Below are positions 32,151 to 54,999 of a stretch of DNA of 64,000 bases, piece after piece. The stretch spans positions 19,530,001 to 19,594,000 of the forward strand of contig CM060732.1 of assembly GCA_030704615.1 (NCBI GenBank). Direction: 5' to 3'. The number at the start of each line of letters is the position of its first letter. Position 1 is the stretch's first letter. The notes beneath the pieces were generated by a model, which ran no database searches, was not told the DNA's origin, and worked only from the letters and a program-made list of their open reading frames with translations. This stretch comes from Takakia lepidozioides. Taxonomy: Eukaryota; Plantae; Bryophyta. Both the position numbers and the translations under genes were made by a program.

Positions 32151-33009
32151 GGCAAAACAGGCTGAAATAGCTCGAAGAAGAAGGTGCCCTCACCACATTG
32201 TCCTCTACCTTGTGTCATGACCCATTGCGGATTAGACTGACCATGAACCCAAGAAGACCTCTTGTGCGTGCTGCTTGTATCTGTAGTCAGGTAATGTGGG
32301 ATTGGTTCGTAAGAACCACCACGGTGCAGCTGAGTGGGCAGAGATTAAAATATGGGCTGCTAAGACCAAGCTGATTCCCCCAAGAACCTTGTGATCATCA
32401 AGAAGAATACCAAATCATGGTACAAAGGGGAGCCAAGAGCCCACATTTGCACAGAATGCGCCCTTGACGCCATAAACGCTTGCAACAACAGGACATGGGC
32501 CTCAATTTGGTCTTCGTCCTTCTCGCATCACTTGCTCGTCTCTCTCTCAAGCCTCCATCCCTCTCCCAACACTTAGACAAATTCAGGCAAAGGACAAAGT
32601 TACTCTTCCACCCTTAGATCATTTTACATCCGATGATTAGAACAATCTCTACGAGCCACACAAGCCCTAAAATACATTAAAATATTCCACGTCATGAGCC
32701 ATGTGGAGCACTTATAAAGATTCCATTTTTGAATAGGGTGTGCAATGAATGCCTAGTTGTTAAGAGTCGTTCTCTAGTGCTTAAAACCACTCGTAATTGT
32801 TGTTTAAAAATAAATAAAAATTACGTAATTGAATTAAATCGCCGCGAATATTGCCCCGACTGCGGAGTCATTGATGCAACTTCTATCCGCCATTAGAAAT
32901 GCGAATTTATCCGTTACGACTGTGCAGTAGTAACAAACATCTCAAAGTTGTTCCCTCAGTGGTTTTGGACATGCAGTCGATTCGGAAAAGACACGAATGC
33001 TTCTAGTGC

Positions 33010-34760
33010 CTGCAGCATAGATGTTTGATAGCAACACATAAGTCGCGGCATCCTGTTCATCCCACTTGAGGATAGATGTTGCCGCACGTTAAGCCATCTC
33101 CACATTGCCATGGATTCTGCAGGCACCAAGCAAGGCCTTCCACACCACAACATCTGGATTGATTGGCATTTTATTAATCAAGTCCACTGCCTCATCCAGT
33201 TGTCCCGCACGTCCAAGAAGGTCCACCATGCAGCCAAAATGCTTTACTGTTGGAGTAACACCATGATCTTGACTCAGGGAATCGAAGTAGCGTCTTCCTT
33301 CATTAAGTAGGCCAGTGTGGCTGCATGCAGAGAGAACACATATAAAGCTGATACCGTCCGGCTTCAAGCCGTTCTTTTACATTCCTTCAAATAGTTGCAG
33401 GACCTCCTTATGACAACCATGCTGTGGGCATATCCTGCGATCATCGCATTCCACGACACCACATTTCGTTCAGTCACATTGTCAAATTCTCCCTCTGCAT
33501 CCTCAATGCACTGCTTCCCCCATCATTTGCTCATAGTTCTCCAAGTCCTCCATCCCACGCCCCTGCTGTGCCTATCCTACAAGCATGGCATTCCATGACA
33601 CCATCGTTCAGCCATATTGTTGAACACTCCCTCCGCATCCTCAATGCTCCCACATTTGGCATACATGTCCACGAGGGTATTGTCTAGAATCACATCTGGT
33701 ACAATTCCAGCTTTGGCGATGCAACCATGCACCTCTTTGCCCTTTTCCAGGGCTGCCAGGCTTGCACACGCACTACAAACGCACACAAACGTGATGTGGT
33801 CGGGCTTCACCCCTTCCCCCATCATTTGCTCATAGGTCTCCAAAGCCTCCATCCCACGCCCCTGCTGTGCATATCCTGCAATTACCGCACTCCACGACAC
33901 CAAATCTCGTTTAGCCATACTGTCGAACACTCCCTTTGCATCCTCGATGCACTCACATTTGACATACCTGTCCAGCAGGGCAGTGTTCAGGATGACATCT
34001 GGTACAAATCCAGCTTTGACGATGTCACCATGGACCTCTTTACACCTTTCCAGGGCTGCCAGGCTTGCACACGCATTGCAAATGCAAACAAACGTTATGC
34101 GGCACATCAATTGCTCATAGGTCTCCACAGGCACCATCCCGCCCCTTGCTGTGCATATCCTGCAATCATCGCACTCCACGACACCACATCTCGTTCAGCC
34201 ATACAGTCGAAAACTCCCTTTGCATCCTCGATGCACTCATATTTGACATACATGTCCAGCAGGGCAGTGTTCAGGATGACATCTGGTACAAATCCAGCTT
34301 TGACGATGTCACCATGGACCTCTTTGCACCTTTCCAGGGCTGCCAGGCTTGCACACGCATTGCAAATGCAAACAAACGTTATGCAGCACATCATTTGCTC
34401 ATAGGTCTCCGAAGCCTCCATCCCGCGCCCTTGCTGTGCATATCTTGCAATCATCGCCCTCCACGAAACCACATCTCGTTCAGCCATATTGTCGAAAACT
34501 CCCTTCATACATGTCCACGAGGGTATTGTTCAGAATGACACTTGGTACAATTGCAGCTCTGACAATGTCGCCATGGACCTCTTCGCCCTTTTCCAGAGCT
34601 ACCAGGCTGGCACACACATCGCAAATGCACACAAATGTGATGTGGTCGGGCTTCCCTGCACAGCAAGGACGTGGTATGAAGGCTTGGAGACCTATGATCA
34701 AATGATGGGGGAAGGGCAAGCATCGTCTTCCATGACACCACATCTCATTCAGCCATAGTG
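33010..34760 (-). pseudogene. PLS-E class PPR pseudogene (RNA-editing-factor type, no DYW)
   Basis: PLS triplets followed by SFICVLSACSHTGLLNEG, HFGCMVDLLGRAGQLDEA, VWKALLGACRIHGNVEMA*RAA...YVLLSNIYA. In-frame TAA at 33089-33091 and several frameshifts. Confidence 0.9.
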
Positions 34761-36784: not shown

Positions 36785-37060
36785 GAGATAAAGAAAGAGG
36801 AGGGGGCTGGTGGCTTGGAGTATTAAAGAAGTTAGATGGCCTTGTAAGGTGGGAACATTTTAGCAGGGGTCAACAGAGAGTGAACAACTGTGGTCTCTTG
36901 GCATTGTGGCCTACCGGGGTCAACCTTACCAGAGGCAAAACCTGAAAACCCTACAATTCAGAATGGGCAAACAGATGAGGAAGTCATAAGCTCCTTGATT
37001 TGCTCTTGATGTGGAAAAATGGGTAATTTGGTTTCCCGGACACAAGAAGTTTCTTTCTTT

Positions 37061-37112
37061 AAGCTCTTTGAGCTATCTGCGGAGGTTATAAAGTACCATT
37101 TCATCTCATTTC
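37061..37112 (+). mobile_element. Short 3' tail of the LINE family
   Basis: AAGCTCTTTGAGCTATCTGCGGAGGTTATAAAGTACCATTTCATCTCATTTC. Confidence 0.7.
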
Positions 37113-37226
37113 TTTATCTTTCTCCCTTTCATTTCCCTTTAAACTCTTCCCACATGAAGATGAAATTCATGATTGATGGCTGGTGATGGGCACAGGGGGT
37201 AGTGGAGGGGGAAAGAGAATCCAAGG

Positions 37227-40200
37227 ATGGCGGGCTGCACAGCAACAGGGACAGCGCCACCCTCACCAGTGACACTAGCAGGTTTCAAGCCCATCTACAA
37301 CCGAGCACGTGGGGCTCTTGATCCATCATCTCCACATGCCCGTAATGTGGCACTGCTTCCGTTCTTGTTTTACATCTATGCTGCGGATGCAGGCCACCTG
37401 CAGGTCCTCACTACAGACTTCCATGCCAACACCTGGCATGCTCGTGTCTCATGTGACCAGCTCCTTGCTCTGGTATGGCCCCCACAGAAACCTCTTGGGT
37501 TTCTGTCTCTTATTCGTACTGCAACTTTGCTTGACATCCAGAGAAGGCACTAAATCTACACATCTAAAAAGAGGGAGGAAGGACAATTGAGATTAAGTTT
37601 TTTTCAATTACGTACACTGAAAGCCCAGAGTCAGTATAATCACTGATTGAGAGATAAGAAGAAATTCAATTGTATCTGTAGGAGGTCTGGAAGGCCCATG
37701 GAACATTACAGAGAGGAAGAAATGAAATGAAATGAAATGGTGCTTTATAACGTCTGCGGAAAGCTCGTAGAGCTTATGGGACAAAATGGAAGAAAACATG
37801 AGAGAGGAACAAATCCAGAAACCACAATTAATGTTCTAGCGATTGTCTAAGGGTGAAGGCCTCATGTAGGTAGGCTGCCAAGCATTTTTGATCCTCATAG
37901 TGAAAGACATCAGTGAGAGTTTGGGTTCCACTGAATAAACAGTGGAATCTCCCACGGATCTCGTAGTATAGAGGGCAGTAGAAGAAGAAGTGTTCTTCAG
38001 TTTCAATTTCCTTGCTGCGCCCTATGCAAGCTGGACATAGGCGGTCCTCCCGTTGCAGGTTTTCCCATCTGCCAGTCTCTATCCGTAGGTTGTGGGAACC
38101 CACCCTGAACCGCCCCAATGCCCTCAAGAGGGAAGGAGATAAGGGTGCTGAAAGGTAATTTGGTCTCAAGATTCTATCATCGCGGAGCACCAAGAATGTC
38201 TCTCGATAGAAGTGGAGCTTTGTCGTGAGATTGGGTAGCATGCAAGTTCTCTTGACATGTAATTCCATAAGCTCTCTCCGAATGAGTCTGTTGCGGTCAT
38301 GTCTGGATGTGATGTCCACCTCATCTGGGTTCATTGGTAATAGGAAAGCAGTAGAAAGTCTGTTACGTTGAAATAAACTGTCCACTCGAGCATACCAGGA
38401 GTTCCTGAAACCTGCAGCTTTGAGCCTCATAGATGTTGTGAGGGCCCTAGCCACTAGCCCTTTGGGTGGAAGGGCCTGCAATCTATGGAGAAAGATTGTA
38501 AGCCTGAAGAGGGCCTCGGATTGCAATGGTACACATGCGAACTCTGCACCTAGGATCTGAGATGGAGTTGTGCTCCTGCGCCAAGCATTGCTGGAGAAAA
38601 AGATGACTGTAATGGTTCCAAATTTTTCCCACCAGGAGACAGGGACACCAGGTGCCCCAGAACTCACAACCATAGATGGTAGCAGGGCTGACGACGGTGT
38701 CAAACAGCCACTTTTTGGTCGGGGGATGCCGCAGATGTATTTGCTTGCATTTGGCCTGAAGGCGGACGGAGGCCGCCTTACCTTTAGTCAACCTGTCCAA
38801 GGCAGTGGTTGCAAAGTGAAACTTGGGGGAGTGGATAACCAGACCTAGGTACCGGTATGATTTCACAATCTCAATTTCCTGCTGGTTGAAGATGAATCTA
38901 CGATCAGCCTGGCCATTGAAGACCATGATCTTGGTCTTGCTAAGATTGACCTGCATCCCATAGTCTTTGCAGAACTGTTCCAAAAATTTTGAGATGGCGT
39001 TGCAGAAAGACCGGGGGATTGTGCCAAAAGGGCAACATCATCAGCATAGAGGAGATCTGATTGGGTTGGTCCCCCATCCAATGGGACCCCAACCCCATGG
39101 TTTTTGATATGTAATTCTCCAAGGCGTCAATGTAGATCCCGAACAGGGTAGGTGAAAGGGGGCTGCCCTGTTGACTCCAATGTTGCTGTGGATCTCGGCT
39201 GAGAATTCACCAGCGACGTTGACCATGCCAGTGACAAATCATACATAGAAGAGATGGCACAAAGGATGTCTGGAGGGACTTCCACTCTATGGAGCCGTTG
39301 GAAGAGAAGGTCCCGAGGAACTGAATCAAAAGCTTTGTGAAAGTCCACGAAGCAAACATAGACCATTCTTTTGTCATAGCGTGCACTTTCCACCATAACT
39401 TGAAGAGTGAAGATGTGGTCAATAGTGGATTGGTTTCGACGGAAACCAGCCTGTCCCTCAGCACGAATGCGAGAGTACTCAGCCCAATCATCCAGTTCCA
39501 TGGCCACTACTGCCCCAAACAGTTTAGCAAGTAATGAGGACACCATGATAGTACGATAGTTTGTCGGTGCGAGCCTGTCACCGCTCTTAAAAAGTGGGTG
39601 GATGATGCTCTTTGTCCACTCTGTTGGGAAGCCCCGTTGCACCACCTCATTGAAGAGGTTAGCTATAAAAGGGGCTAAAGTAGGTGCAGCATGCTTGATG
39701 AATTCACTCTGAAGTCCTGAAATGTCCACCGCTCTGCCATTTTGCAGCTTCTTGATTGCCTTACTGACATTGGCTGTAGTAAAGAGAGAGAAGTGAAGGG
39801 GTTTAGAGGTTATAGGAGAAGGAGTTTGGGTTGGGGAATGGTACAAAGACTGTGCATACTCATGCCAGACATGAATGTCAGTGATTGGGGGGGGATCTCT
39901 ATGAGGTTTAAGGAGGGACCAAAAAGATCGAGGAGAAAATCTGATTTTAGCAAGGAAAGAAGATTGCAACTTGATAGTGTAGGCTTGCTTTTTGGATCTA
40001 ATGAGGGACTTATAGTGCTTAAGAGCAAGATTAGTGGACTCTGGAGAAGAATTGGTATCAAGTAGTAAAAATTTGATGCGACGTCTAGCAGTTTTGCATT
40101 CCTCATCATAAAATGGTGCGTAACGACGAGTGGAGAAGGGTGAGGAGGTAGATGGAAGGGTGACGGGAAAGGATCGCAGGGCTGAGTCCCAAAGGGCTTG

Positions 40201-43200
40201 AGTAAGATGTGTAGCCTTGTCGTTAGGAGATGATAGATGTAGAATGGAAGGGAGGGTTGACGCTAGGTATGTTTCATACTCGGCGTCGTGTAAGTGAGAG
40301 AAAGGGGTATTAAAGTGGATACGTGGGTGTAAGGGAAGAGACGCAGAGGGGATCCTCACGGGGAGGGAGATGGAAGGAAATGCAAAGGAAAGGCAAGAGT
40401 GATCAGAATCTGGGTACCTCGTGATGTAAAAGGAGCTTATCTATCAGGCTTGTTGGGGCTCCCCAAGAGATAGTCAACCACGCTTTGGCCCTTGTACGTG
40501 TGGCAAGTGAACTGGCTGGAGGATTTGAAGTTGGTGTTCCATTGTAAATGGACAGCCCCTGAGTTTCACAAAACTTGAGTAGATGGTGACCGTAACTTGT
40601 GATTTCGCAAGAGGAATCTGCACTTTGCCTCTCCAATTCCGTATGCGAGCGTTGGATGTGTAGAGGATCTGTGTGTGGTCGAAGGTGGGGGCCTGTAGTG
40701 ATCCTGTACGGGCGTTGAAATCTCCAACCAAGAAAATGTCCGTTTGTGGGGTACGGAGACGGGCCATATCGTCTTCCAATGGAACATATGGTGAATCTGT
40801 TCGAATATGTAGGCCGCTGTGCGGAGATGCGGCCGGAGCAAAATAACATCCCGCCAGCAGGATGTTGTAGCCTTTGATGTGACACCAAATGTACCTTGCC
40901 AGTGGGTCTTTGTATGGGAAGGAGATAAGTGGGAGAAGCCAGTCAGCAAAGTAACAAGCCACACCTCCAGATCCTTTGAGACCTGTACGTGGACGAATCA
41001 CTGAGTGAAAGCTATACCCGAGAATAAAAGGGGGGTCCTTTCCTTCATACGCATGAGTTTCCAAAAGAAAAAGAACATCACACTTGGAAAGAATATCTAG
41101 AAGCCCTTGAGGGTGGCTCCACAACGAGCCATTACAGTTCCATGAGCCAATGTGTAGATGTGAGCGTGCGTTGGTCTCATGGTGCCCCAACCCCTATTTA
41201 GAGCTAGAGGGGCGACGTTCGTGCTCCCGGACAATTACCCTCCCATCTCGGTACACGGCATAGTGCCCTTGAGCTCGAGCTTGCTTAACCTGCAAGAGTT
41301 GCGCCTGCATGGCGTTGTATTGCAAAGGGGTCAAGTCATCGTTGAGGTACATACCCTGACCTCTCAATTGAGGCCTCTGCCTGAGGACTCTATCCGAGCA
41401 CCCTTGTCCTTGAATCTAATGAAGAGGACTTTGTGCTCTGAAGATCCTGCACGCCAAGCCCTTCAATGCCACTCGTGCCCCGTGGGAGAGCAAGGTTTTG
41501 CTGAATAAGGCTGGTGGCAGCGTCAAGGGTCCCCCTCAGCAAGGCCCCCTAGCTTCCCAGTGACCCTGATGTTAAGGGCTTTGAAAGCCCGTTGCTGTTC
41601 CTCTCGCAAGGTAGCCGAGACTGTCTCCTCCAGAGAGTGAGGACTGTTGTTGGATGTGCTCCCCTTAACTATATTAGCCCAGGAGGAGGCCTCTGCCTTG
41701 TGAGCTTGGAGCTCCCGAGCCATTGTAGACGTCGCAGTTCTGTGTGTTTCCAGCTCTTTGCTAAGGGATTCCACTTGCAGGTGGATGCTTGCTGTGAGGG
41801 GATCTGGGAGGCTCTTCTCTGTGAAGGTCTTCACTTCGCCTTCAAGTTTTGAAAGACGCGTATGTGTGGATTGTCATTGAGATGTTTCACCAGACCTTGA
41901 AGTTTGCTAGTGCACTCCTGAAGAGAGGCCCGCAAAACGCTATCCTGAACTCGCATATTGTTCTCCAAGTCTGTGTATCTGTCTGTCATGCGCTTCTGCC
42001 AATCTTTGTCCAAGGAATACATGCGCTTTTCCCAATTTTTGTTAAGGGAAGCCAACCGCTCCTCCGAGTCATTGTCACGGGCGGCGAGCACTTGCTGCAG
42101 AGTCTCCTCCGAGATGCATTTCGTTTGTACGATGGAGATTTGGTCTCGAAGCGTTTGAACATCAGCACTCCTTGTGGAGTACTGACGCAAAAGAGAGGCT
42201 TGATGAGAGACAGGGGCAGGAAGAAGAAGCAGAGGGGAATCAGGTCGACGTGAGGGAGACGGGTAGTCTACCTCGTCGGCAGCCGTCCTTTGGCGTTTGG
42301 ACGTCATGGTGTGGTGGAGATGGCGCTAGCGCGCCAACGCCCGTGAGCGCAGCGCCTACGTGCTGCCGCGCGCGCGCGCGAGAGAGAAACGAGAGAGAGA
42401 GAGCGAAGAAGAGGTGAGAGAAAGTAGAAAGAAAGAAAGCCAGAACGAAATAGAGAGAAGTCTATGGGATGCCCGGAGGACACATAAGAACAATAAGAGC
42501 ACCAAAGGAACACATGAAAAATCCAAATGTCGCTTGGAGACGGGATGCGGTAACCTCCTAAGCACTTGGGGCCCTCATAGCTGATGGCCTCTGCCAAGGA
42601 CAGAATCCCTAGAAATACACCAGGATCTTCCCCTGATCTGGTATTAGCTAGGGCACGAGTAAAGGAAAAGTCGACTGGAGAAAGAGTGTTAAATTTTTCC
42701 CTACATTACTTCAACTTCGGGCGCTTCATGTCAATCCTCTTCTGGAGAGACACCTGTAGCAACTGCATCAGTTTGTTCCATTAGGTCTTCATGATTCCAG
42801 GTCCCAAACCTCACATGCACGGAAGGCAGTCGCAGTTATTTCTGCATTAAATAGTCATCTCCTCCGATCCGTGTCTCAAGTGTGTAGCTGGTGACATTGT
42901 CCTTGCAAGAGTGATGCTGCTGGGCCTTTACCAAATCTGTCTCACCATGAGATCGACATGGACATAAATCACCCAAGTTATGTCTAGGATTCAGCTACAC
43001 AGAGAGAAAGAAAAAGACAAGTACGTTCATGGTGTCCACGGGGGGCCCAGAGGCTTCATTGGATACAGTAGAGCACAGTACAACTACCGAAACCAAAGGA
43101 GAGAAAAAGAGAGCAGGGGACGATGAAAAGGAAGATTTCCTGGCAGTTACTGGGAGGAGCTGGCTAGTCTCTGTGTTCCTGTCGTCAGTGTCACATGCTT

Positions 43201-46200
43201 AAGGGAGCAGATTAATGGTGTCGCTCTTCCTTGTGATTTTGGAGAAGCAGAAAGAGAAGCTGGCCTTCACGGGCAACTTTGGATCACATGTACAAGTACT
43301 GCACAAGGGGTTTTCATCAGATGATGTGAAGGTGGAGTTGGGTGGGCCTGCAAGTGCGATTGGGGGCATAGGTGAGCTGGTGCTATCTTGACAACATATG
43401 CCTCTTTGGCCTCATCTGAAATTAACACATTGGCATGGAAAGGGCTTGGACATTGCTTTGACCTAATTGAATAGCAGATGCCTGCAACAACGTCTTGCCA
43501 CAATCACGGAGTCTATCATTGCACTCCGAGAACAAGACACAGCCTGCTGCCCTTAGGGCAGTTTGTCACCTCCAGAACTGCTCAATACAGCAGTCATGTA
43601 TGAACTCAGAGTGCTCACCTTGATTTCTAGAAAGGATGAATTGAAAGTGAGGACTAACTGCCTTCCACCAAAGTTGTTGACCATGTCACTTTGGAGCAGG
43701 CTCAAATCTATTTGGAACTTTGGAGCCTTGTCTGTACAAGTGGGCCTCAAGGAAAAAGTGGAGGGCTTGGCACTATCCAACACTAAGAGTAGGTTGCTAA
43801 ATGTTAAACTAGGAGAGAAAACTGGAGTGCTGGATACAATGGTGAGGATAGGGTGCACCACAGTGGGCATTTTGCAAGGGAGATGTTCTGTTTGAATTGA
43901 TAATTCACTGGAGCCACTTCTTGCTAGTCTGGGAGTGGTGAAGAGGAAATGTCAACAGCTATGACCATCCCTGGGTCTGAATTTTGGGGTGGAATCTTGC
44001 AGTCAATCTGCATACACAACTGGTTTTGCAGTTTGACTGTATCTCTTAGTTCTGCAGCAATCCTCCATTTGACCAGCATCTGTGGATGACAGATGACATC
44101 TAAACTTTTGTCAGAGCCTTTGGCTTCCAACTATGTGCAACTTTCGGTGATTTATGCATTCACTCAGTGTGTTGGTGGGGGATGGATTGACTGCAAGGCA
44201 GGTGCCACAACAGCAAGCCTTAAGGTGGCCATTTCTGCATTGGGAGGGGACCCACGCCCTGATGTGGGACTCAACCTGGAACTTTCACATGGCCACATTG
44301 CAAGCGACGATATGGGCACCTTAGCCCTGGAGATTTTTGAAGCCTTTATACAAGGTTGGTTGCTGGCGGTAGCATTACCTGCATATACTTTGCTGCTTTG
44401 AAGAAATCATGTCAAGGTGTGTTGGTCAGGATTGTATTCTCTGCACATGGCAGCTTTATCTCACTCACCATCTCATAATAACCTATATTGTTGGATAGAG
44501 TCCTCAATACCTGTTCCTGCTCTAACAGTACCAATCTGAGTATCCAAGAATGAAGTGACTAAATCATGTGGCCTAAGAGCTGTAGTAATATGGCCAGAGC
44601 AGATGCACCTTGGGAGACTCTTGTGCATAGATCATCTCTTATATTGTTCTCGTCACCCCATATGTGACACCCAGGCAAGGCTACTGCTTGATGGATAAGG
44701 AAATGCCTCCACAAACTCTACTTTGGTTGCCGTTTACTGGTTGCACTGTCACTGTTTCAGCAGAGGGCACCTAGTACTCTTCTCAGCTGCCAATCTAAAT
44801 CTGTTTGGTGGGCTCCTGGTTGTCCCAGCTAAGGGTCGCATCGCTCAGCTCGAAGGAGCCCTCAGGAAGGAGAAGGTATTTTCGGCCGTTTGTCCAAAAC
44901 ACAGCCACAGTTTGAAAATGCAGTAGAGTGTTCCCAGTTAGTAAGTTGTTATTTTGGCATCAAATTTTCCTGTCCATTCTTTAGCTTTTTCAACATTAGG
45001 GTGCCTGGAAATGTTATGTTCAGGAGAAGTGCGCGAAGGTTTTGGATGCAGTTGTCCATAAGAAAGCAAGCACAATCCATTTTATCACCACCCGAGCTCC
45101 TGGCGATGTGGGGATTGTGTGTCCTCTGACAGAAACTGGGGCTGATGGCTGTCAGACACCTCCGTCCTCTATTGAACCTCACCCTCTGACCTCCTCCCCT
45201 ACCCTGTCTTTCTCCCCACAATCCCCCAGTCTTAGCCAAGGAGGGGGGGAGTCGCAGCTCAAGGTGTCAGGCTTGCCAACAACTCGCGTGAGACTTGGGG
45301 GGAATGGGAGTGCTCGTAGCAGTGCATTGAAATTGGCAGTAGCAAACAGCTATGCACGGGTCACTCCTAACAAACCCTCAGGTACCAGTCTTGCAAACAT
45401 AAAAGCTGCATATATGTTGGAATCACCTGGTTTCCCATGTCTTGGTCATTGCATCTATGTCGACAGCTACTTTCTGTCCTCAACAAAGTTTATATGAACC
45501 TCCTTCATGCGGTTAACCGCTTTTGCACTGTTTGATTTTTTATTCCATCTTGTAGTTAAGAAGGACATGGAGAGTGATGAGGAGAGGCAACAGCCATCAT
45601 GTTCGGAGAACCAGACAGGGAGCCGAGGTACTCCCAGCAACAATTGTAGCAACAATATCAGAGCGCTGCACGAACTTCCTCACAGCTTGGAGGACCTTGC
45701 AGGCCTCAGTTCAGGAAAACGCAAATATCGGGATCTTGACCCACATATACTAGCCAAGATTGATGCCGGCGGCGAGAACAGGAGTGTCAGGAGTGATATG
45801 TGGGCGAGGTACAGTGTTAATGTCTTGTTATCAGTTACTACGGCCTTGTCAACAGTGGTGCAAATTTAGCTTCTTACTGAAATGCCTGGGTTTATGGGTT
45901 TAGATCTCTTTTCTGAGGAAGCTAATGAGTTATGCAAGTCAAGTTGTTAAATCTAAGATCAGGAAATTTCTTGATACAGTCATCATCACCACTTGTCTAT
46001 GCCCAAGGCAGAGCGACAGCTGTCTGCTTGTTTGGAGTTACATTAGGTGGTAGGTAAAATAGACATTGCATATACTGGCAGTTCATGCTCTCAGCAGTGA
46101 GTCTCAACAGTTCATCTGTACTTCAGAAAATGTGGTTGCACATCTTGCACATAACTGAAGGGAGACGAGATCTCTAATGAAGGATTTCAAGCCTTTTCTG

Positions 46201-49200
46201 TTCTTGATGCTGCTGCTTTTGTTTCTTTCTTGTGCAGCTCCATTTACTGTAGACACAATTCTGCAAAGTTTAGTGATGTCCATTGATGTGAGAAAAGAGC
46301 AAAATGTTTGTTCAAGGGAAGGTGCTTTTTCACATTTCAATGCAAGAGGCAAGGGACATGTATTGGTCAAGAAAGCATACAACTGATGGCCCAGTGCCTT
46401 AGGCACAAGGCTGCCTTGCAAGTGGTTCTGGAATTCAAGTCTGCTTAGGTATATTGGGTGTCACCCATTGCAGCCAACCCAGCTATAAAGGGGGGTCATG
46501 GGTAAATTGGCCACCTAATGTTGTGGTTACCTAGGGCCTTTTGAACTAATAGAACCGAAGGTCATAGGCCGGGAAGGATTGGGCACCCATGGCTGTTAGA
46601 ATGCTTTGACACACATGCTCTTTTTTTCCTTGGTAAGGGACAAGAATGATTTCAGCCCATTTTGAAAGGTGTTGTAGTGACCAAACAGCCACTCCAATTC
46701 ACCAGCAACAATGTAGTGTGGTTCAATTGCATTGTATGTGGCAAGGAGAGAGAACCCTGAATTGACCTGATGTTGTAATGTCAGGCGGATTACATGGAAT
46801 GGCGCGCAAGGATTTACAGAGAAGGAAATTGAGGAGTTGCCTATAGCAGAGTTCGCAGAGACTCTTGTCAAATTTTTCTGCATGGTGAAAAAACGCAGCG
46901 GTGACCTATTCCCCTCAGACAGGTCATTGCAATCTCATGCTTCTTTCTCTCTTTCTTCTGAGCTTTCCGCGGACGTTATAAAGCACCATTTCATTTCATT
47001 TCATTTCTCTTACGAACACTGTACTGACTAGCACATGAGAGAGATGGTCACATGCGTGCTTCTAACAGGTCATTTATGCTCATGGCTGTTGCTCTCTTGC
47101 AGCAAATGTAGTTTACAAATTTGATAGAAGGAGATAGACACATAAGTGGGTTTGGATCTCTGTTGGTGTGTAGAATGGGTGGATAGCTTGGTTGGGACTT
47201 TGTGACGAGAACAGAGAAACGCTGTGTGGCAGGGAACAGATTAGACACTGTTATGACTGGTTGACCGTTTGCTTCCGTTCTTACACTCAAACGAATCCAA
47301 TTCTCTGGTTGGCTGGTTGGATTGTGCAGTCTAAAGGCAATGTTTCGAGGGTTTGCACGAATCCTCAACTTCCATTACAAAAAGTTGGCACTACAAGGTC
47401 AGCATGATGGTCCAATTGTGGAACCCAACAAAGACATGCTGTTTGAAAAGGCCCGAATTGCGTGCATGGAGGCAATGAAGTATTCCATCCTCAATGGGGC
47501 CAATGTGAAGAAGTCAAAGCTGGATTTGCATCCCCCTGAGTCAGAGGAAGTTTTCTTACAGCATCCAGATAACCAGATTTTGGACCCAGATGGGTTGGTA
47601 CGGCGGCTGGTGTATTATGCAATTCATCAATTCCAGATTTATGGCAACATGGAGCTCTATGACACCACCGATGTTGAGTTCCGGAGAGGTGTCGATGAGA
47701 AAGGCATAATTTACTGGGAGTAAGTCCTTTGTTATTTACTGGGAGTACATCCATAATTGCACTACATCAATGTTATTACATATGAAGTAATGATGGGCAT
47801 CCTTGTCATTCTTATGCACCAATTGCATGATGGATTCACAGGTCCACTCTTGGGTTGGGTTGCCAGATACAATGAATCATGCGCTCTGAGATACAAAAAC
47901 AAAAGCAGTTGGCGAGAGGTGGTGCGCTGCTCAGAAAAAGATGTAGTCTTGTGCTGGGATGCATATGTTTCTCATGTCCCACCGAAGCCCTTAGAAAACG
48001 AACCCCGCCGCTTCTTCCTTTCTCCTATCAAGCGACCTGCATTGGTAAGCTTCATGTTCTTTCTAGTATAAAGTTTATGGTGGTCAGGCTGTGTGGTGGC
48101 ACTTTTGTCTCCGCATGTAGTCTTTTGGGTTACCCAATGGTTGTTTTGTTTTGAATATTGGTCCCAACATAAAGATTAGATTGTTCATTCTGGCTGGTAC
48201 TGTCATATGTAGAGGTCATTATATTTCAAAGCAGCCTTGGTTCTTGTGATGAATCAAAGCCCTCTATTTCAACTTTGCTGTGGGGTCTATAGCATCGGAT
48301 TTGGAGACCAGGCCCCCCCAGGCCAAAGAGAAAAGATCGGGAAGCAAGACTAGCACGGGTGAGACTTCTCTTCCAAGAAGTATTGAAGTAAATCAATTAT
48401 CTCCCTTTCAAGAGCTGTGCCTTCACAAAACCATCTCCGCCATCGGGTAAAATGATAGTGGTCAGTGTTTGGAGCACTGAAATGACTGTTTGGTGATGGA
48501 GAGGTTTGAACATTCGTGCGGTCAGGTATGGTTCCGTCATCAAAATCTGAGCTGCCGGACTCTCCTCAAACTGTACCGGCAGCTGGGAGGACCCAAACTG
48601 GAGGAGCTGCCTATGGAAGCAAAGAGAGCACATCGACACTCCTTGTCATTGCTGAGGTTTGCTCTTGCCTTTAAGCTCTCTGGGCTCTTTGTGAGCAGTT
48701 CCTTCCTTCCTTCTTTATTCATTTCATTTCATTTCCTTCTTTATCTCTTTCTCCTCGGTGGTGGCTGATCTCTGGCAGAGAGGCATTTGTAAGTTTGAAC
48801 ACCAGAAATGCTTGGCAGAGCCAAAATCCTGGACACACCCACAATTGAAGACAACATGAAGCTGCTTGGATCGTACAGTGACAAGCATAACTAACCTGAC
48901 TCAAAGAACAGACCGGATAACAGATCCTCACTCCTATGGCTTCGCACTTTGGCACTGCATCTTGGGGCTAAGTTTGGAGTCCCTTCATGTGGTTCTCAAT
49001 GTTGTTCTACTTCATCCCATGGGCCCTCGAAACCTCCCGTTATTAAAAGTTACTTTCTTTATGTTTCTCTATTCCTCTCTCTTTCCTGTAGACTCTATGG
49101 CCACAAGGCTACAGCAAACGTCCTACGAGTACATTCTGTTTCCTGTAGGCCGTCTGGGCCTGGGGTGCATATAATGAATTTCTCTTTTTTTCATTTTGTT

Positions 49201-49924
49201 CAATGGCCGTATGCATCTTCTCCCTCAGCCCAGGCATTTGTAAACCATTAATGCACAATCTGGAAGTGGAGTTAACATTGCTTGTTTTCTTCTGCTCTGT
49301 ATATTTATGGTTTTAGAGGGAGATACTACTGCATCCCTGGCAGAGGACTTAAATGTGAAGATCAGAAGTCCTTGGCCACTTAACTTCATGAGGCACTCTG
49401 CATTCGAGCAGTGATGTAGTCCTGATTGACCAGAATCTTGTTATATAAGCTCTTTGGGCGTCCTGTACACGTAATAATTCTCATTTTTTTTCTTCACTCG
49501 CAGAATGTTGCATGAAGCAGCATTTAGAGAAGTGAGGGTATTTGCAACTATTGACCCAAAGGATGGCATGCCGTGCATTAGCTACGTAGGTAACAAAGCT
49601 GGTGGTTGGACTGTCTGCAAACTCAGAAATGGGAGAAGTGAAGAGAACGTGGTTCGGAGGGCGCACCTTAACTTGCCAGCTGTTTGTGGAGTAGAAGAGG
49701 GGGTTCACTCCCGACTCCAATATGACCAGTTGGATATGTTGAAGACAGAGCAAGCAGGGAGTGCCAGTGAGGATGCTGATGAGGACGAGGAACCAGGTGA
49801 TAATGAGGATGAGGGAGACTATGAAGATCTGGATGATGATGACGACAAGGGGGCTTTTGAAGAGCATGGGGTCAAGGCAGAGCTGGACCCTGCATGCTCT
49901 TGCTTAGATCAGATCTCTCTTTGA
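37227..49924 (+). CDS. Predicted 811-aa fusion: plant PAXX/XLF-like (At5g64010-family) N-terminal domain + coiled coil + Ser/Pro linker + Crypton-derived DUF3504-like domain + acidic tail; 11 exons
   Basis: Exons 37227-37472, 43251-43371, 44202-44354, 44829-44875, 45024-45381, 45556-45808, 46785-46922, 47330-47719, 47867-48044, 48526-48656 and 49504-49924. All introns are GT-AG with matching phases; 2436 nt with no internal stop. N-terminal motifs: GFKPIY..PFLFYIYAADAGHLQVLTTDFHANTW..S.DQL, FSSDDVKVELGGP, ASDDMGTLALEIFEAF. C-terminal motifs: LVKFFCMVKKRSGDLFPSDSL, DPDGLVRRLVYY, FFLSP..VWFRHQNL, HRHSL. Confidence 0.75.
37719..42440 (-). mobile_element. Near full-length LINE (RTEX/L2-like: ORF1 + APE endonuclease + RT + C-terminal CCHC), antisense in intron 1, frameshifted
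   Basis: ORF1 runs from ATG 42307 (coiled coil, SWANIV, LNIRVTG, YLNDDLT) to TAG 41196-41194. ORF2 has GSWNCNG, LLETH, LVGDFNARTG, QAGFRRNQSTIDH, FVDFHKAFDSV, LLYADDVALL and RFRVGSHNLRIETGRW..LCPAC..ETEEHFFFYC. The 3' tail is (ATTTC)4 at 37719-37738. The 5' boundary and TSD were not resolved. Confidence 0.92.
46960..47007 (+). mobile_element. Short 3' tail of the LINE family in intron 7
   Basis: GAGCTTTCCGCGGACGTTATAAAGCACC(ATTTC)4. Confidence 0.8.
48870..49485 (+). mobile_element. Degenerate LINE 3' relics (two families) in intron 10
   Basis: 49090-49135 resembles the 3' UTR at 24880-24920. 49300-49485 resembles the ORF2 end and hairpin of the 37.7-kb LINE. Confidence 0.55.
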
Positions 49925-51205
49925 GTGTCACTAATGTTTATGCACTCTGGCTAGTTGTTGCAACCCGAAGTCCAAATCTGAATGGGACATGTTCTGCTGT
50001 CTGCCCATCTACACAGGCTAAGAATTAATTTGCCGGAGGGAGAGCTCAAAACAGGCTGGAATATCCTGTCTTCTGCATAGAGCAGTCCTTAAGGACAAGT
50101 CCACTTACCTTTGCAGATGGGTTCTTTATCATCAGACTCGATGAAGTTTAACAATCTATGAGTGCATTTGTCCCTAGGTTGAACTGGGAGTACTCCAATG
50201 TTCAGCATGGCCAAGTTGACACCATTGCAATACAGAAATCACAAAAACTTTGATGCTGGTTGGGGCATCCAATATGATTCGGCCTCTCAACTTTAATCCT
50301 TTTTTTTTTTTATGATTGCAATCAACTGCTTCTGTTGAACAATATGGCAATGTGCGGAGCTTTATAGAATACAGACGTTCTATTAAGACTTGGGGGTTTT
50401 TAACCTGATTTTAAGTCAGTTTTTCTAGCATGATACCAGTCTGAACTTTGGCATCATATTGATATGGCAATCATTCCTGGATCAACTTGTCCCTTCACAT
50501 TTAACCTTGCAATAATCATGAACTCACATCTACATGCGAAGAAAACCAACATCATTGTGACATGTCCGAGCAAACGTTTAAGGGGGGACCTGTCCAGGAA
50601 CTTGGACCATGGTACCACTATTTAGGGTTCAAGCTGAAATGCAGCTTCATTGCATTTTTAGTGTCAATCTACAACTTTGATGATAGATGTTACTCATTTC
50701 TATGTAAACTAATGTAGTAGCCTTCTCACTATTCAATCAGTGGAGGGAGTTGTTCATTAAGGTTGAGATTGAATCACCTTGACTGTTTGCCCAATGATCA
50801 CTCAAGTACGCAATACATATCTTCTGTATAGGACTGATGGAAGACAGTATAGCATAACTTTGCAGAACTGAGGCCATGGTATCGGTCCTGTCGCCTGTGA
50901 CTCGCTCCCAATGTCATTGCAGGGAACCTGCTTCAGTCATGTGAAGAATACAGCATGTCAAAAACGTTCACTAGCCATCGTACCTTACGCTCTCGGAGAC
51001 TCCTGATGGCAACTTCCAGGGTGGGATCAAGGGATGGATGGTGGATTGTGGTACGGTACCTTCCAGAGATGTGAGAGTCGTTTCCTCTCTCTCTTCGGCA
51101 CATGGGGCGGCCTGATGGTCAAGGTCTCTTTCCGCCTTCCCCAACACCAAGCTCTTCCAAGGCAAATATGAAAGTCTCACACACAAGTTTGGAACTAAGA
51201 TTCCG

Positions 51206-51545: not shown

Positions 51546-54500
51546 ATGCGGCAGGTTCCTTGGGAGAGCTGGCAGCAGTGGCACCATGTGCGCTGCTCCC
51601 TCTTCTCAGAATCATCCTCTCGAATTGCCGAAGCTCTTGATCGCGTAAGGGTCAATGCTCGTGAACATTTGTTGTCGTCGATTTGTTGGGCTAGATTCTC
51701 CAAATTGTACGGGAAGAGTTGATGCAGAATGTGCGTGTGTTGCAGGTGGCAGCATGGCGGAGCAGAGGGCAAGTTCCAGTGTCCGTGGATATCACCGCTG
51801 AGCTTATAAGCATTCACTGGAGGGACTCCCAAGTCACGTGAGTATGGTCAAATGCTACAGCTTTCAAAACTCTTCTTCAAGGAGAAATGCATTCATTTAG
51901 CTCCCCAGTCAGCACGTGTGTTGAGAAATTCGTGCCTGGGAAGGGTAATTCTGACTTGTATAAACGTCGTGAAATTGGTGAGCAGTGGGGGATTATCACA
52001 GCATTCAGTCCTTCCAGAGGAGATGCTTCGGATGATGTACGCAATGGCGATAATGAGGTAAGCCTCGTCGGAAATAGACCATTTCAGTCTGTGTCCTGTA
52101 ACCTTCCGGTGTTGTGTATTTGCCATAGCCCTGTGCTATCATAAGTGAATCCGTGTTTACGTTTGTTTTCGTAAATGCTACTACAGCCCTTTTACAGCAT
52201 TTGCAAGCTCCAGGAAATAATACCTAGGATGTTGCTGGGTTTTGGTTTGAAGTCCATGAAGTGTCAAGGGGTGATGCTGCAGGCTGGTGAATGGGGTGGT
52301 AGATCAATCGCAGAAACGGAATACAATGTCAGTGGCAGCACGTGCCGAGACAGCACAACTTCCACGTCTTCTCGTTGATATTCGCCATGGTGCGCTTGGA
52401 TCACCCTTTCTGTCTTAGCTGCAGGTACCGCCTTCTGTGCATAGTTTTTTGGGTGGATCGTGGAAGAAGCGCATGAGTCGATCAGTTACTGATTGTTTGT
52501 TACTTGAGTACTGCTGGTGAAGACGTACATATGACGTTCTCCACAAAGTTGGCGCGTCCAGCAGCATAGTGCCTGCCATTGCATGGAAACTTTACGAATG
52601 GTTCTGTTAATCACTAGGAATCCTGCTAGGTTAATCTTCTGGACAACTGTATATTAGTGATGGATTGAACTGTGACACTGCTGTGGTGATGACAGAGGCT
52701 GCACATAATGAGCTTCCAGGCCTGCCTCTGCTACGCCATGCAAGCAAACAGGTTTGGAAGCAACCTTGTAGGCTTTCTAGGAATTTTGTTTAAGAAAGAA
52801 TGTAATGGAAGGACAATGAGCTACTAGGGTGCCATCTAATTTACCAATTTGTTCAGGTGATTTGTTACATCTTTTAGCTCTATTCTTCTTGGTTTTCAAC
52901 GCTTTACACTTGGTTTACTCAAGGTTGACTGTGGTTATCATAGAATGTTTGCTTGCTTGTATGTGTGTTTCGGCATGCAACGTCTCTTGTTCTCTTGCAG
53001 AAGGAATTATACATTTTCTCAGGCTTGTGTAGTACCATCCTCTGGTGGTCTCGTTGTTTGAGAAACTTTAGGTTGGATAGGACTCATTTTATTTTGCTCT
53101 TCCAATAGGGTTGAATGGGAGAGGGTAAATTGTGGTGGGGACTTAGGCACTAGCCTGGCTGCAAGCACACTACTGGGAGGTGCAGCAGCAGGTTTTGCAC
53201 AATGCTCGGATGCTGTTAAAGTCCAAGCTTGTGGAACACTCTCAGCTGGTTCATGAAAGTTTGCAACCACAGCAGGTTTTTGGAAACCAGATGGATGGGC
53301 AAACTCGTAAACAGCAAAAGAAGCAGCTCAAGCGCTTCCTCCAAGGTAGCTGCCAAGATGCAATTTTTCATTAGCATGAAACCATCCATCTCCTTTTGTA
53401 AGATCTACTCATTGAGCTGAGTCTCTGCTTAAAGAGAAATGATGAAAAGGTGTGAAATATTTTCTGGATGCAGTTGCAAAGCAGCGACAGAGGGCAGTCT
53501 TCAGGGAGCTGCTGGAGCTTGCCCATTCTGCTGTCTCAGATGTGGTGAGCATACTCGTGGATGATGGAGTGTTGGTGCATGACAACTGGCCTACAACAGC
53601 TCCCACTGTCAACGGAGTTGCTGGCCTTGATGTTGAAGACGATGAAGACATTGCTGATGATGAGGATTCAAAGTCAGGGTTGGAGAGTTCGGGGACACTG
53701 ACCACTTTTGAGTGGGCTGCAGCTGTTGCATGGAAAGAGACTTTAATTCAGCTTTCAGCTCACATTCCCCAACTGCCAATGTTGCTGTTGGTTGCAATCA
53801 TTGAGCACATGGCAGGCCTCCATCCTAGTGATCTAGATACATCAGATGGGTATGGGCTATTCAAGTCATCAGCATTGCCAGATAGGTTGCCAGAGTGCTC
53901 TGACCCTGTTGCTAGTGACCGCTACATTGGATGGGCCACTTGGATTCTTGGTGAAGGGCATCTAATTGAGGATGACCGCACAGTCAGCAATGGTTCAGGA
54001 AAGGCTCGATCAGTGACTTGGACTGGGTTGAAGTCAAATATGCCAGTGGAACTTGCGCGGCAGTTGGTAGGCATTTGTTTGAAGAGCACCTTGAATAGAA
54101 AATTTCTAGGGAAACTTGTTCCAAATTTGGCCGAGCGGGTTGGTGACAGCTCATATCTGCACCGCGTTGTCTCTCTTGCTCGGTATGGTCCAAATTTTGT
54201 ATGTGGCAGGATTGATTGCCAAGAAGATGGTCAGGCTGGGCAAGATGCCGACAAGAATGGACCAGGCAAATTTGTTGGTGGAAGTGAAGAGAATCATTCT
54301 CAAGGATACATCAATGCCAGCACAGATTTTGCAGGAAAGCCTCAGCAGTGCAAGATGCACAGCCCTGAATCAGCATTGAAGGAGGCCAGGCAGCAACAGC
54401 AGGCCTTCTTGGAAGCTTTTTTTGTAAGTGAGGCTGTTGAAGATACATGGGAACCAGCTCAGGAAAAGCCATCAGGCAAAGTAGGACAATGGTCAAGGGT

Positions 54501-54999
54501 TGAGGGATGGGAGCCTTGTGCACTTGGTATGCTCCCATCTCCTTATCACTGCAGGGGTATCATTCCCAAACTGAGCAAAACTCTCATGGATGTCAGTCGA
54601 CAGAAAACATTTTCGCAGGAAGTCAAGGGAGGAGTGACGGTCAAGTGCAAGAATCAGCAAGGGGAGGTAGAGTGCTTGCAATTGACACAGAGAGCAATTG
54701 TTGAGCCTCCAAGACAACTACAGCTTGAAACTGATGAACCTTCATCTCTTGGTGAGAAGGGGCTGGAGCCCGAACATGATGCCAAGAGATTGAAGGTAGT
54801 ACAGTTCCAGGATGAGGTCTTGGAGAATGAGCCTGCTTTACGGACACAAGTTGACCGCAGTCCAAAGACACAAATTCTGAGTGATGATAAGGGCGATGAA
54901 TGTTTCAGATGGCAGGGTTGCTTGTTGCAAGGAGGTTTTGTACAGCCTTGTCCAGTGCAAGATCTTGCCTCTCTTCAGGCTGCCATCCATGTACTCTAG
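51546..54999 (+). CDS. LAS1: LAS1-like HEPN endoribonuclease (pre-rRNA ITS2 processing), 7 exons, 716 aa
   Basis: Exons 51546-51644, 51746-51837, 51986-52057, 52283-52389, 52696-52751, 53147-53345 and 53474-54999, all in phase. Motifs: VPWESWQQW, AWRSRG, LRMMYAMAIMRLVNG, LVDIRHEAAHNELP (RxxxxH), ALAWLQAHYW. Confidence 0.92.

Follow-up and report, generated by a model that had tools for sequence, protein, structure and literature searches.

The locus at 37227-49924 of the 64-kb window (the whole stretch of DNA analyzed here) is a single transcribed gene with 12 exons and a protein product of about 792 aa. Its N-terminal half is, judged from sequence comparison, a diverged paralogue of PAXX, and exons 6-12 encode a putative catalytically dead tyrosine-recombinase module with DUF3504/Crypton domains as nearest named relatives. 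The family is conserved in lycophytes, ferns and conifers and apparently undescribed, and we are close to certain of the architecture and its ancient origin. Taken as a whole, the best explanation, a PAXX paralogue fused to a dead recombinase and serving as an end-joining tether, has roughly even chances of being correct. Plant NHEJ is poorly known, with PAXX recognized in plants as late as 2023; if true, a conserved PAXX paralogue carrying a dead recombinase would represent a lineage-specific addition to plant DNA repair.

Transcripts and exon structure

Transcript contigs were taken from two runs, X1 and X2, presumed by guess to be RNA. The origin of these contigs from spliced transcripts is shown by nine GT..AG joints, 45381/45556 included. 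The RNA-backed model comprises 12 exons and 792-794 aa, replacing the 11 exons and 811 aa of an earlier note based on the letters alone; that note's open joined frame, without internal stop across 37227-49924, and its 5.8-kb intron were both borne out. Its 3′ exon structure gave way to exons at 48293-48358, 48526-48656 and 49627-49924.

All exons lie on the plus strand. Exon 1 (37227-37472) starts with ATG 37227, encodes the first 82 aa of the PAXX-like head in an open reading frame and ends at a GT donor, both boundaries lying exactly where they had been placed before. Intron 1 (37473-43250, ~5.8 kb) contains a degraded minus-strand LINE with recognizable endonuclease (40477-41190, minus strand; Pfam Exo_endo_phos, E 3.4e-11) and reverse transcriptase (39130-40359, minus strand; Pfam RVT_1, E 2.2e-10) regions. 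The joint between exons 1 and 2 was inferred from the span of a transcript contig together with a Diphasiastrum intron that matches in position and phase. For exon 2 (43251-43371), an alternative NAGNAG acceptor exists at 43245, but acceptor 43251 suits the family better, since a 2-aa gap relative to all orthologues then disappears and the intron columns coincide; at the 3′ end, X1 contig text corresponds to 43340-43369 and joins exon 3. Exon 3 (44202-44354; X1 and X2 pieces with a GT..AG joint) spans the end of the head domain and the start of the coiled coil, which continues through exon 4 (44829-44875; GT..AG joints 44354/44829 and 44875/45024 in X1 and X2) and ends in exon 5 (45024-45381; contig piece), where the disordered linker begins.

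Between the PAXX-like and recombinase-like halves lies the junction intron (45382-45555, plus strand, 174 nt), whose phase 1, GT..AG ends and pyrimidine-rich acceptor agree exactly with the earlier description. Contigs from both X1 and X2 cross 45381/45556 in spliced form with GT..AG ends. Under our bridging rule of at least 31 letters on either side, this joint is spanned by a 3012-nt X1 contig only, the shorter side measuring 255 letters there and 21 letters (upstream) in the X2 contig; transcripts joining 45381 to 45556, as the fusion model had anticipated, are present in this X1 contig. Conceivably, two adjoining genes could be involved instead, a PAXX-like one running up to the stop at 45495-45497 and a Crypton-like one starting from ATG 45567, with the joined ORF an artefact or a rare read-through. 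The unspliced upstream frame does end at this stop, an in-frame ATG follows 70 nt later, 11 nt inside exon 6 (as the earlier note had claimed), and minor intron-retaining isoforms would be compatible with the contigs. However, the intron interior has zero depth, the dominant contigs are spliced at 45381/45556, and transcript assemblies and gene models from six or more additional species encode the same fused ORF, with the junction intron in common, so that we give separate genes next to no credence.

Downstream, exon 6 (45556-45808; X1 and X2 pieces, GT donor at 45809) encodes linker and the start of a core-binding-like domain, which extends through exon 7 (46785-46922) and ends in exon 8 (47330-47719; contig pieces), where a partial catalytic-like domain begins. 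Exon 9 (47867-48044; contig pieces, GT..AG joints) provides the beta strands of the latter. Exon 10 (48293-48358; joints 48044/48293 and 48358/48526 in both runs) adds a 22-aa basic insert that is missing in every aligned orthologue and in the Diphasiastrum gene. Exon 11 (48526-48656; contig evidence) contributes the last conserved helix of the module, and homology with complete recombinase-like relatives stops here. Exon 12 (49627-49924) encodes an acidic tail, with 29 D/E in the final 92 aa, and closes with stop codon 49922-49924, the gene end already assigned by the earlier note. The X1 contig runs 316 letters past 49950, giving a 3′ UTR of ~340 nt.

The window allele departs from the transcripts at the start of exon 7. 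Over its first 22 nt (46785-46806), the window shows a compensated +1/+5 change relative to both transcript contigs. Ahead of the first core-binding helix, these contigs encode a motif that is invariant in the family and has been replaced in the window allele. Four further differences are single-base changes, all of them non-synonymous, and at one site both runs oppose the window. The family may therefore be real and the window copy nonetheless a damaged or hypomorphic allele or an assembly error, which would be compatible with our main explanation. We consider this improbable given the open frame, the intact state of all splice sites and an overall divergence from the transcripts of ~0.2%.

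PAXX-like and recombinase-like halves

For the N-terminal half, exon 1 alone matched residues 9-64 of 8p26_A (PDB title, Arabidopsis thaliana PAXX) with E 0.034, the orthologue P0002 matched 8p26 with E 6e-6, and a profile of nine family N-termini had 8p26 as its sole significant PDB match (E 2e-16). An AF2 model of P0002 residues 1-275 displayed a head at pLDDT 80-94 and a helix at 151-196. Foldseek with this orthologue model, rather than the joined window protein, placed chains of 8p26 in the top nine positions (TM 0.84-0.87, rmsd 2.2-2.8 Å), followed by CCDC61, SAS-6, XRCC4 and XLF. The predicted fold is an XRCC4-type head and a short coiled coil without fold-back. The earlier assignment of exons 1-5 to the At5g64010/AtPAXX family thus holds for both profile and fold, and the anticipated XRCC4/PAXX-like head with coiled coil is seen in the P0002 model. 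A homodimer model scored 0.79 against 0.01 for the best control, with a symmetric parallel interface at 150-195, agreement between runs in at least 94% of contacts and partner pLDDT of at least 86; in calibration on eukaryotic proteins, the mark was reached by 17 of 29 pair-solved and none of 30 single-chain-solved cases. The model may have passed because it had learned XRCC4-type dimers from solved structures.

Ceratopteris, Adiantum, Psilotum and Diphasiastrum encode a stand-alone PAXX of 252-273 aa beside the fused form, answering positively the question, raised in the earlier note, of an unfused paralogue in ferns and lycophytes. The stand-alone proteins match 8p26 much better (E 6.5e-29 versus 6e-6), and AtPAXX is hit with 104 bits by fern stand-alone PAXX versus 28 bits by the family N-terminus (single sequence). 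In the tree, fused and stand-alone PAXX form two clades, each with 100/100 support. Because of this separate clade and the coexisting stand-alone PAXX, we rejected the fused gene as the canonical PAXX orthologue of its lineage, and the retention of a separate PAXX of about 250-270 aa in ferns and lycophytes marks the N-terminal half as a diverged paralogue. Given its distance from AtPAXX, the partners of PAXX may have been lost.

Plant PAXX (At5g64010, F4KC77, PDB 8p26; Khan & Ochi) shares with the fused form a homologous head and a short coiled coil without fold-back, predicted to dimerize, but it belongs to a different clade and ends in a Ku-binding tail, whereas the fused form continues into a ~180-aa linker, a ~300-aa recombinase module and an acidic tail. 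In AtPAXX, Ku is contacted via the C-terminus (190-236, L228) and XRCC4 via the head (bioRxiv 10.1101/2023.05.26.542399). In the fused form, the canonical Ku-binding position is taken by the recombinase module, with the acidic tail behind it as the extreme C-terminus. Exon 5 contains a short, family-invariant LKL..NSY motif (45327-45353, plus strand), internal in the protein and preceded by basic residues, in which L-K-L is invariant in nine of nine orthologues; that it represents a remnant of, or replacement for, Ku binding would be a guess.

For the C-terminal half, a Foldseek search with the whole module returned Cre chains at all of the top 24 positions (best E 1.4e-3, TM ~0.26). The core-binding domain aligned to Cre residues 38-132 (VIA) with Z 9.9 and rmsd 2.6-2.9 Å over 91-93 residues. 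Neighbors by ESM features were DUF3504/KIAA1958-like clusters (0.96-0.97), and Atlas neighbors by shape were DUF3504, KCTD1 and QRICH1 clusters (TM 0.39-0.48). The catalytic-like half of the model reached a pLDDT of 50-70, and its fold assignment therefore rests mainly on profile homology. At the Pfam PF12012 (DUF3504) gathering score of 29.7 bits, no window exon matched, nor did any full-length orthologue at E ≤ 0.01; sub-threshold matches occurred in four of ten module sequences (best E 0.0034). Of the DUF3504/Crypton assignment in the earlier note, the nearest named relatives are hence retained, while a Pfam DUF3504 match is not.

Unfused relatives of the module were found in liverworts and environmental data, with a near-complete catalytic signature. 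Their alignment with the fused module by hhalign (E 6e-53) covers columns 12-307 of the relatives' 393 and ends ahead of the catalytic C-terminal segment of these relatives, which keep R..K..xxR..H..Y. The segment with Arg II, His and Tyr is absent from the fused module. All four aligned fused members have Y, N, F or D in place of Arg I, with the adjoining motif conserved; in the window protein this position (within 47637-47660) is Tyr. Because Arg I is replaced and the Arg II/His/Tyr segment is gone, the module is predicted to be unable to cut DNA. We rejected an active Crypton transposon on the basis of the lost catalytic residues and the incomplete recombinase domain.

Distribution and age of the fused family

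Full-length fused orthologues were identified in Selaginella (two paralogues), Diphasiastrum, Adiantum, Pteridium, Taxus and Cryptomeria, and also among transcript-like Logan contigs. Database entries label all the orthologues of these plants "hypothetical", and our literature search found no published description of the fused family. The same architecture is therefore encoded in at least six further species, in line with the fused orthologues that the earlier note had proposed to look for, but its view of a local capture gives way to an old gene family that was already in databases without a name. Across their whole length, the orthologues share 42-49% identity with the window protein. Both halves are about equally conserved (55-67%), with the head domain at 55-60% across lineages; for the recombinase module, per-column identity among ferns, lycophytes and gymnosperms is 73%. 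Of the 11 introns of the window gene, ten have a positional counterpart in Diphasiastrum: seven share the alignment column and three, including the junction intron, lie within 2-3 columns; the counterpart of the junction intron has the same phase and lies at most two alignment columns away. Exon 8 alone retrieved fused orthologues with E 8e-45 to 5e-36. Among database sequences from angiosperms or mosses, no orthologues were found.

These data bear on the idea of a mobile, multicopy Crypton that makes up the downstream half and was inserted by chance behind a PAXX-like gene. The near-complete catalytic signature of the unfused relatives in liverworts and environmental data speaks in its favor. 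Against it, the module is single-copy in the 64-kb window, where no second copy was found, and an exhaustive search of 1.84 billion representatives yielded six close clusters only; moreover, catalytic residues are gone, the domain is truncated, and module identity across three plant groups is accompanied by introns in common with Diphasiastrum. We regard a chance insertion as highly implausible and the locus, on these comparative grounds, as a conserved host gene. The family originated in the fusion of a PAXX duplicate with a Crypton-like recombinase, a type that survives unfused in liverworts.

Putative role and comparison with known fusions

The predicted protein comprises a PAXX-like head (~aa 23-150) followed by a parallel coiled coil (~aa 155-200). 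A disordered linker of ~180 aa leads to a Cre-like core-binding domain (~aa 384-494) and the first part of a catalytic-type domain (~aa 525-670), and the acidic tail comes last. The coiled coil would probably mediate homodimerization and thereby present two recombinase-derived clamps for DNA or chromatin; the head may have kept its contact with XRCC4, and the linker motif its contact with Ku. A catalytically dead, dimeric DNA- or chromatin-binding scaffold is a moderately probable outcome of this arrangement. Its likeliest role would be that of an accessory tether in double-strand-break end joining, although a function specifically in NHEJ is a tentative assignment with somewhat less than even odds.

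At the more speculative end, and rather doubtful in its entirety, non-flowering vascular plants would have a second end-joining accessory factor that had so far escaped recognition, a PAXX paralogue in which a Crypton recombinase clamp replaces or supplements Ku tethering and a homodimer holds two DNA duplexes or ends directly. This factor would predate the divergence of lycophytes from the fern and seed-plant lineages, have been retained from then on and have disappeared in angiosperms; it would also be the first land-plant case of Crypton/DUF3504-type domestication to be described. That angiosperms lack it could matter for how they differ from ferns and gymnosperms in repair outcome, T-DNA integration or genome-editing behavior.

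The same architecture might do another job, that of a transcription or chromatin regulator like ZMYM2-4, QRICH1 and KCTD1, in which the PAXX-like part only dimerizes. Most domesticated animal Crypton/DUF3504 genes act in transcription regulation (PMC3212892), the N-terminal half has diverged much from a canonical PAXX that persists alongside, and a long acidic tail is typical of activators and histone-binding proteins. On the other side, the conservation extends to the head domain and not to the coiled coil alone, the invariant linker motif sits at the spot of the partner-binding tail of PAXX, and ZMYM3 itself is reported to act in DNA repair (PMC5358723). We give a purely regulatory role clearly less than even odds.

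The animal DUF3504 genes (KCTD1, KIAA1958, ZMYM2-4, QRICH1 and WOC; Kojima & Jurka 2011, PMC3212892), the nearest neighbors of the module by ESM features and by shape, likewise combine a tyrosine-recombinase-derived domain lacking the catalytic tetrad with an unrelated host module. In the animal proteins, however, the catalytic residues are mutated and the partners are zinc fingers or BTB, whereas here the domain is truncated before Arg II/His/Tyr, PF12012 remains sub-threshold, and the partner is an XRCC4-superfamily scaffold. The lineage differs too, being that of land plants, and liverworts hold the unfused relatives closest to the module. The fused gene would carry Crypton/DUF3504-type domestication beyond animals and fungi into land plants and offer a natural example of how a recombinase clamp functions without its chemistry. 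The length of the proteins permits expression, an assay set exists for AtPAXX, and the liverwort unfused relatives and same-species stand-alone PAXX provide built-in comparisons.

SETMAR and CSB-PGBD3 are young, primate-specific fusions of host genes to DDE-type transposases (mariner and piggyBac) with a link to DNA repair. They resemble the present gene in their in-frame, splice-mediated fusion to a transposon-derived DNA-binding domain and a plausible repair link, but here the donor is a tyrosine recombinase and the fusion is common to lycophytes, ferns and gymnosperms. In land plants, ALOG proteins are described as derived from DIRS1-type retroposons with only the N-terminal domain retained (Iyer & Aravind 2012, PMC3537659). 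Pfam ALOG gave no match for full-length orthologues or module sequences, and unlike ALOG proteins, the fused module also retains part of the catalytic domain.

Transcript support and gene model

Assembled contigs from two public sequencing runs of the source organism, X1 and X2, were aligned to 43960-49950 (5991 letters). Between 20% and 25% of sampled words from 43200-49950 were present in X1/X2, approximately the exon share, and the contig pieces were split by nine GT..AG joints. The contigs, whose RNA type was guessed, are intron-free with canonical ends, so their source must be spliced transcripts. One of the nine joints skips 174 nt, and with the aligner's +2 shift applied its ends fall exactly at 45381/45556. 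It corresponds to the junction intron (45382-45555) between the PAXX-like and recombinase-like halves, for which the earlier note had sought spanning reads. A 3012-nt X1 contig bridges this joint with GT..AG ends and at least 255 letters on either side. An X2 contig of 1832 nt reaches only 21 letters upstream of it, below the aligner's bridging rule, and was not counted. None of the X1/X2 contigs gave depth within the junction intron. Both halves are carried on one mRNA.

The plus-strand gene comprises 12 exons rather than the 11 originally counted, and its product has 792 (or 794) residues, not 811, according to the spliced contigs and the sequence. Exon 1 (37227-37472) was placed by sequence, its joint with exon 2 being inferred outside the aligned stretch, and the joint between exon 2 (43251, or 43245, to 43371) and exon 3 was confirmed by contig loose-end text. 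Contig joints and sequence together define exons 3 (44202-44354), 4 (44829-44875), 5 (45024-45381), 6 (45556-45808), 7 (46785-46922), 8 (47330-47719), 9 (47867-48044), 10 (48293-48358), 11 (48526-48656) and 12 (49627-49924). Every intron has GT-AG ends, and no stop interrupts the 792 (or 794) codons; intron 1 contains a degraded LINE on the strand opposite to the gene. The start (37227), stop (49924) and junction intron of the first model agree with the spliced contigs and sequence, as do, from the sequence, its ATG at 45567 and read-through stop at 45497.

Several exon-level differences separate the assembly from the transcripts. At 46785-46806, contigs of both runs have +1 and +5 letters compared with the assembly and encode a family-invariant motif directly ahead of the first core-binding helix, where the assembly encodes six unrelated residues before the frame is restored. 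The discrepancy stems either from an error in the assembly or from a real variant allele with a compensated double indel. Further differences, at 45244, 47629, 47925, 49656 and 49832, comprise four single-base substitutions, all non-synonymous (G263E, Q539R, R589C and R704L), and a deletion in the acidic tail, where X1 lacks 6 nt present in the window. At 47629, X1 and X2 concur and the window differs. Exon 10 (66 nt, phase 0/0) adds a basic 22-residue insert and is present in contigs of both runs; because it has no counterpart in any orthologue compared or in the Diphasiastrum gene, it may be a lineage-specific exonisation.

The PAXX-like N-terminal half

Database searches and fold and complex models used single window exons or natural orthologues as stand-ins, while the joined window model served for the frame check, tblastn against the window, blastp, MAFFT alignment and tree. 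Exon 1 alone matched a single PDB chain, 8p26_A (E 0.034), and exons 2 and 3 alone had no PDB match by sequence. A profile of nine family N-termini (A1) retrieved 8p26 as its sole PDB match, with an E value of 2e-16. This entry, titled 'Crystal structure of Arabidopsis thaliana PAXX', agrees with the 236-residue AtPAXX F4KC77 (Khan & Ochi). In the AlphaFold model of residues 1-275 of the Selaginella orthologue P0002, the head is predicted with confidence and a helix spans 151-196. In Foldseek, the best nine matches of this model were 8p26 chains (TM by target 0.84-0.87), followed by CCDC61, SAS-6, XRCC4 and XLF. The family profile and the orthologue fold match thus place exons 1-5 in the PAXX family, as first proposed from sequence motifs, and bear out the expected XRCC4/XLF/PAXX head and coiled coil. 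When two copies were modelled together, they met in a symmetric, parallel coiled-coil interface; the score was 0.79 versus 0.01 for the best control, a pass that may reflect the predictor's memory of solved XRCC4-type dimers.

The search for an unfused PAXX paralogue was positive. Profile A1 also retrieved stand-alone proteins of 252-273 aa from Ceratopteris, Adiantum, Psilotum and Diphasiastrum; these were reached by the profile only, a homologue search with P0002:1-235 returning nothing at E<=0.001. The Ceratopteris stand-alone protein matched 8p26 with an E value of 6.5e-29, compared with 6e-6 for the fused Selaginella protein. In a tree of the head and coiled coil, stand-alone and fused proteins formed separate clades, each supported at 100/100, and Adiantum and Diphasiastrum possess both genes, so the fused gene stems from a PAXX duplicate. 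Judged from these sequences, the fused N-terminal half is not the lineage's own PAXX.

We also considered whether an ancestral PAXX Ku-binding tail was kept in the junction intron, where the stretch following the 45381 donor loosely resembles the human PAXX tail. This candidate was rejected, as no segment of this kind is conserved in the orthologues and contig depth is, again, lacking there.

The recombinase-derived C-terminal half

Sequence-based domain searches gave little for exons 6-12. Nine single-exon window ORFs had no relevant Pfam match, orthologues matched DUF3504 only below threshold (best E 0.0034), and two profiles, A2 for the fused module and A3 for its unfused relatives, found no tyrosine recombinase in the PDB by sequence. 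Their top PDB matches, RPA49 (E 0.0013) and a homeodomain-only protein, look like chance, and weak matches under the cut-off to the Pfam families THAP9_C, SANT_DAMP1 and Sen15 were treated as noise.

The module model has a mean pLDDT of 67, with residues 25-135 at 85-91, and its 24 best Foldseek matches are all Cre chains. With VIA, the confident part aligns to residues 38-132 of Cre, the core-binding domain, with a Z of 9.9, clearly above unrelated rows; other recombinases and Ndc10 come next. Neighbours by ESM features are DUF3504/KIAA1958-like clusters (0.96-0.97), while Atlas shape neighbours are DUF3504, KCTD1 and QRICH1 clusters. The Crypton/DUF3504 identity initially assigned to this half is therefore backed by these neighbours and the Cre-like core-binding domain; at the level of Pfam it falls short, DUF3504 being sub-threshold in orthologues and absent from the window exons.

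Exon 8 alone, searched against 1.84 billion representatives, returned six clusters of close relatives (E 8e-45 to 5e-36) and a further 17 that were distant, the latter including unfused liverwort proteins from Marchantia and Calypogeia. The unfused relatives retain a recombinase-like signature (Arg, Lys, N-x-x-G-R, G-H and Tyr), and one has a weak Pfam Phage_integrase match covering precisely the signature end. A2 and A3 align with an E value of 6e-53, covering only columns 12-307 of the 393 in A3. The fused module ends ahead of the segment with the second Arg, His and Tyr, and the first catalytic Arg is replaced in all fused members aligned, by Tyr in the window protein. It is thus a truncated, chemically dead recombinase. 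Five of these relatives, P0020, P0016 (Calypogeia fissa), P0007 (Marchantia), P0018 and P0011, have a near-complete tyrosine-recombinase signature with Asn at the first His position. They may represent Crypton-like elements that are still active, or else an independent domestication in liverworts, and are the likely donor lineage of the fused module.

Conservation and possible function of the fused protein

In the close exon 8 clusters, the proteins are full-length, 650-750 aa long, and come from Diphasiastrum, Selaginella (two paralogues), Pteridium and transcript-like contigs; a second search added fused proteins from Adiantum, Taxus and Cryptomeria. Without exception, they are annotated as hypothetical or uncharacterised. 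Each starts with the motifs of window exons 1-5 and continues with the exon 6-12 module, and the window protein can be aligned to them over its whole length at 42-49% identity, with Diphasiastrum at about 42%. In the tree it clusters with the lycophyte members (support 86/97). Mapping the Diphasiastrum orthologue P0001 to its own locus showed that 10 of the 11 intron positions of the window gene are shared in identical phase, seven at the same alignment column and three within 2-3 columns. The junction intron is among them (phase 1, with an offset of 2 columns where the alignment is rich in gaps). Between window and orthologues, the two halves are conserved about equally (55-67%). Mean column identity of the recombinase-like module is 73% across ferns, lycophytes and gymnosperms, and the linker is variable apart from an invariant L-K-L followed by NSY. 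The fused gene is old and conserved. Database matches included no angiosperm or moss protein, though both groups are heavily represented, a database observation that does not in itself prove loss.

Selaginella moellendorffii has two diverged fused paralogues, each as two near-identical loci: P0002/P0033 (LOC9653486/LOC9657420) and P0006/P0045 (LOC9657615/LOC9650439). The second lacks the NSY of the linker motif and has a long branch. A C-terminal motif, acidic-x-(I/L)-(S/T/N)-(L/M), occurs in the window protein, P0001, P0002, P0052 and P0058; it ends window, lycophyte and gymnosperm proteins, not those of ferns, and may be a terminal docking motif.

Neither component is new in kind: PAXX was reported from plants in 2023, and DUF3504-like domains derived from Cryptons in 2011. 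One general review apart, we found no literature combining PAXX with DUF3504/Crypton, and no paper on At5g64010 by name, 8P26 as PAXX or Selaginella PAXX. Neither the restriction of this combination to non-flowering vascular plants nor a land-plant Crypton-type domestication was described in the papers found.

Cre clasps the DNA duplex between its core-binding and catalytic domains. By homodimerising through the coiled coil, the fused protein would present two recombinase-derived clamps per particle. Domesticated recombinase domains are regarded as DNA- or protein-binding modules (PMC3212892), and in AtPAXX the head binds XRCC4 and the C-terminal tail around L228 binds Ku (bioRxiv 10.1101/2023.05.26.542399). 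The fused family keeps the PAXX head and, in the region equivalent to the tail, has a conserved motif that contains leucine. On these grounds we tentatively favour a DNA-tethering accessory role in end joining. The main rival, a transcription or chromatin regulator using the PAXX part for dimerisation only, is in our view just somewhat less likely.

Other features occur within and around the gene. On the plus strand, 53452-54999 is a single-exon ORF of 515 aa without a Pfam match at E<=0.01, and several PLS-type pentatricopeptide-repeat-like ORFs, seemingly tandem and partly out of frame by eye, lie on the minus strand at ~31300-34500. Within intron 11, many high-depth X1/X2 contigs at 48960-49160 stop abruptly at ~49087-49094 and 49127-49137, and their flanks are unrelated; they seem to represent a dispersed repeat that is expressed but does not belong to the fused gene. 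An element of 49 nt, which includes a (GAAAT)n-like run and is probably of the short dispersed type, is present in intron 1 (37718-37766) and, inverted and at 98% identity, in intron 7 (46960-47008), where it overlaps 46980-47015, flagged as a repeat in read alignment. A diverged copy lies directly upstream of the start codon, at ~37050-37130.
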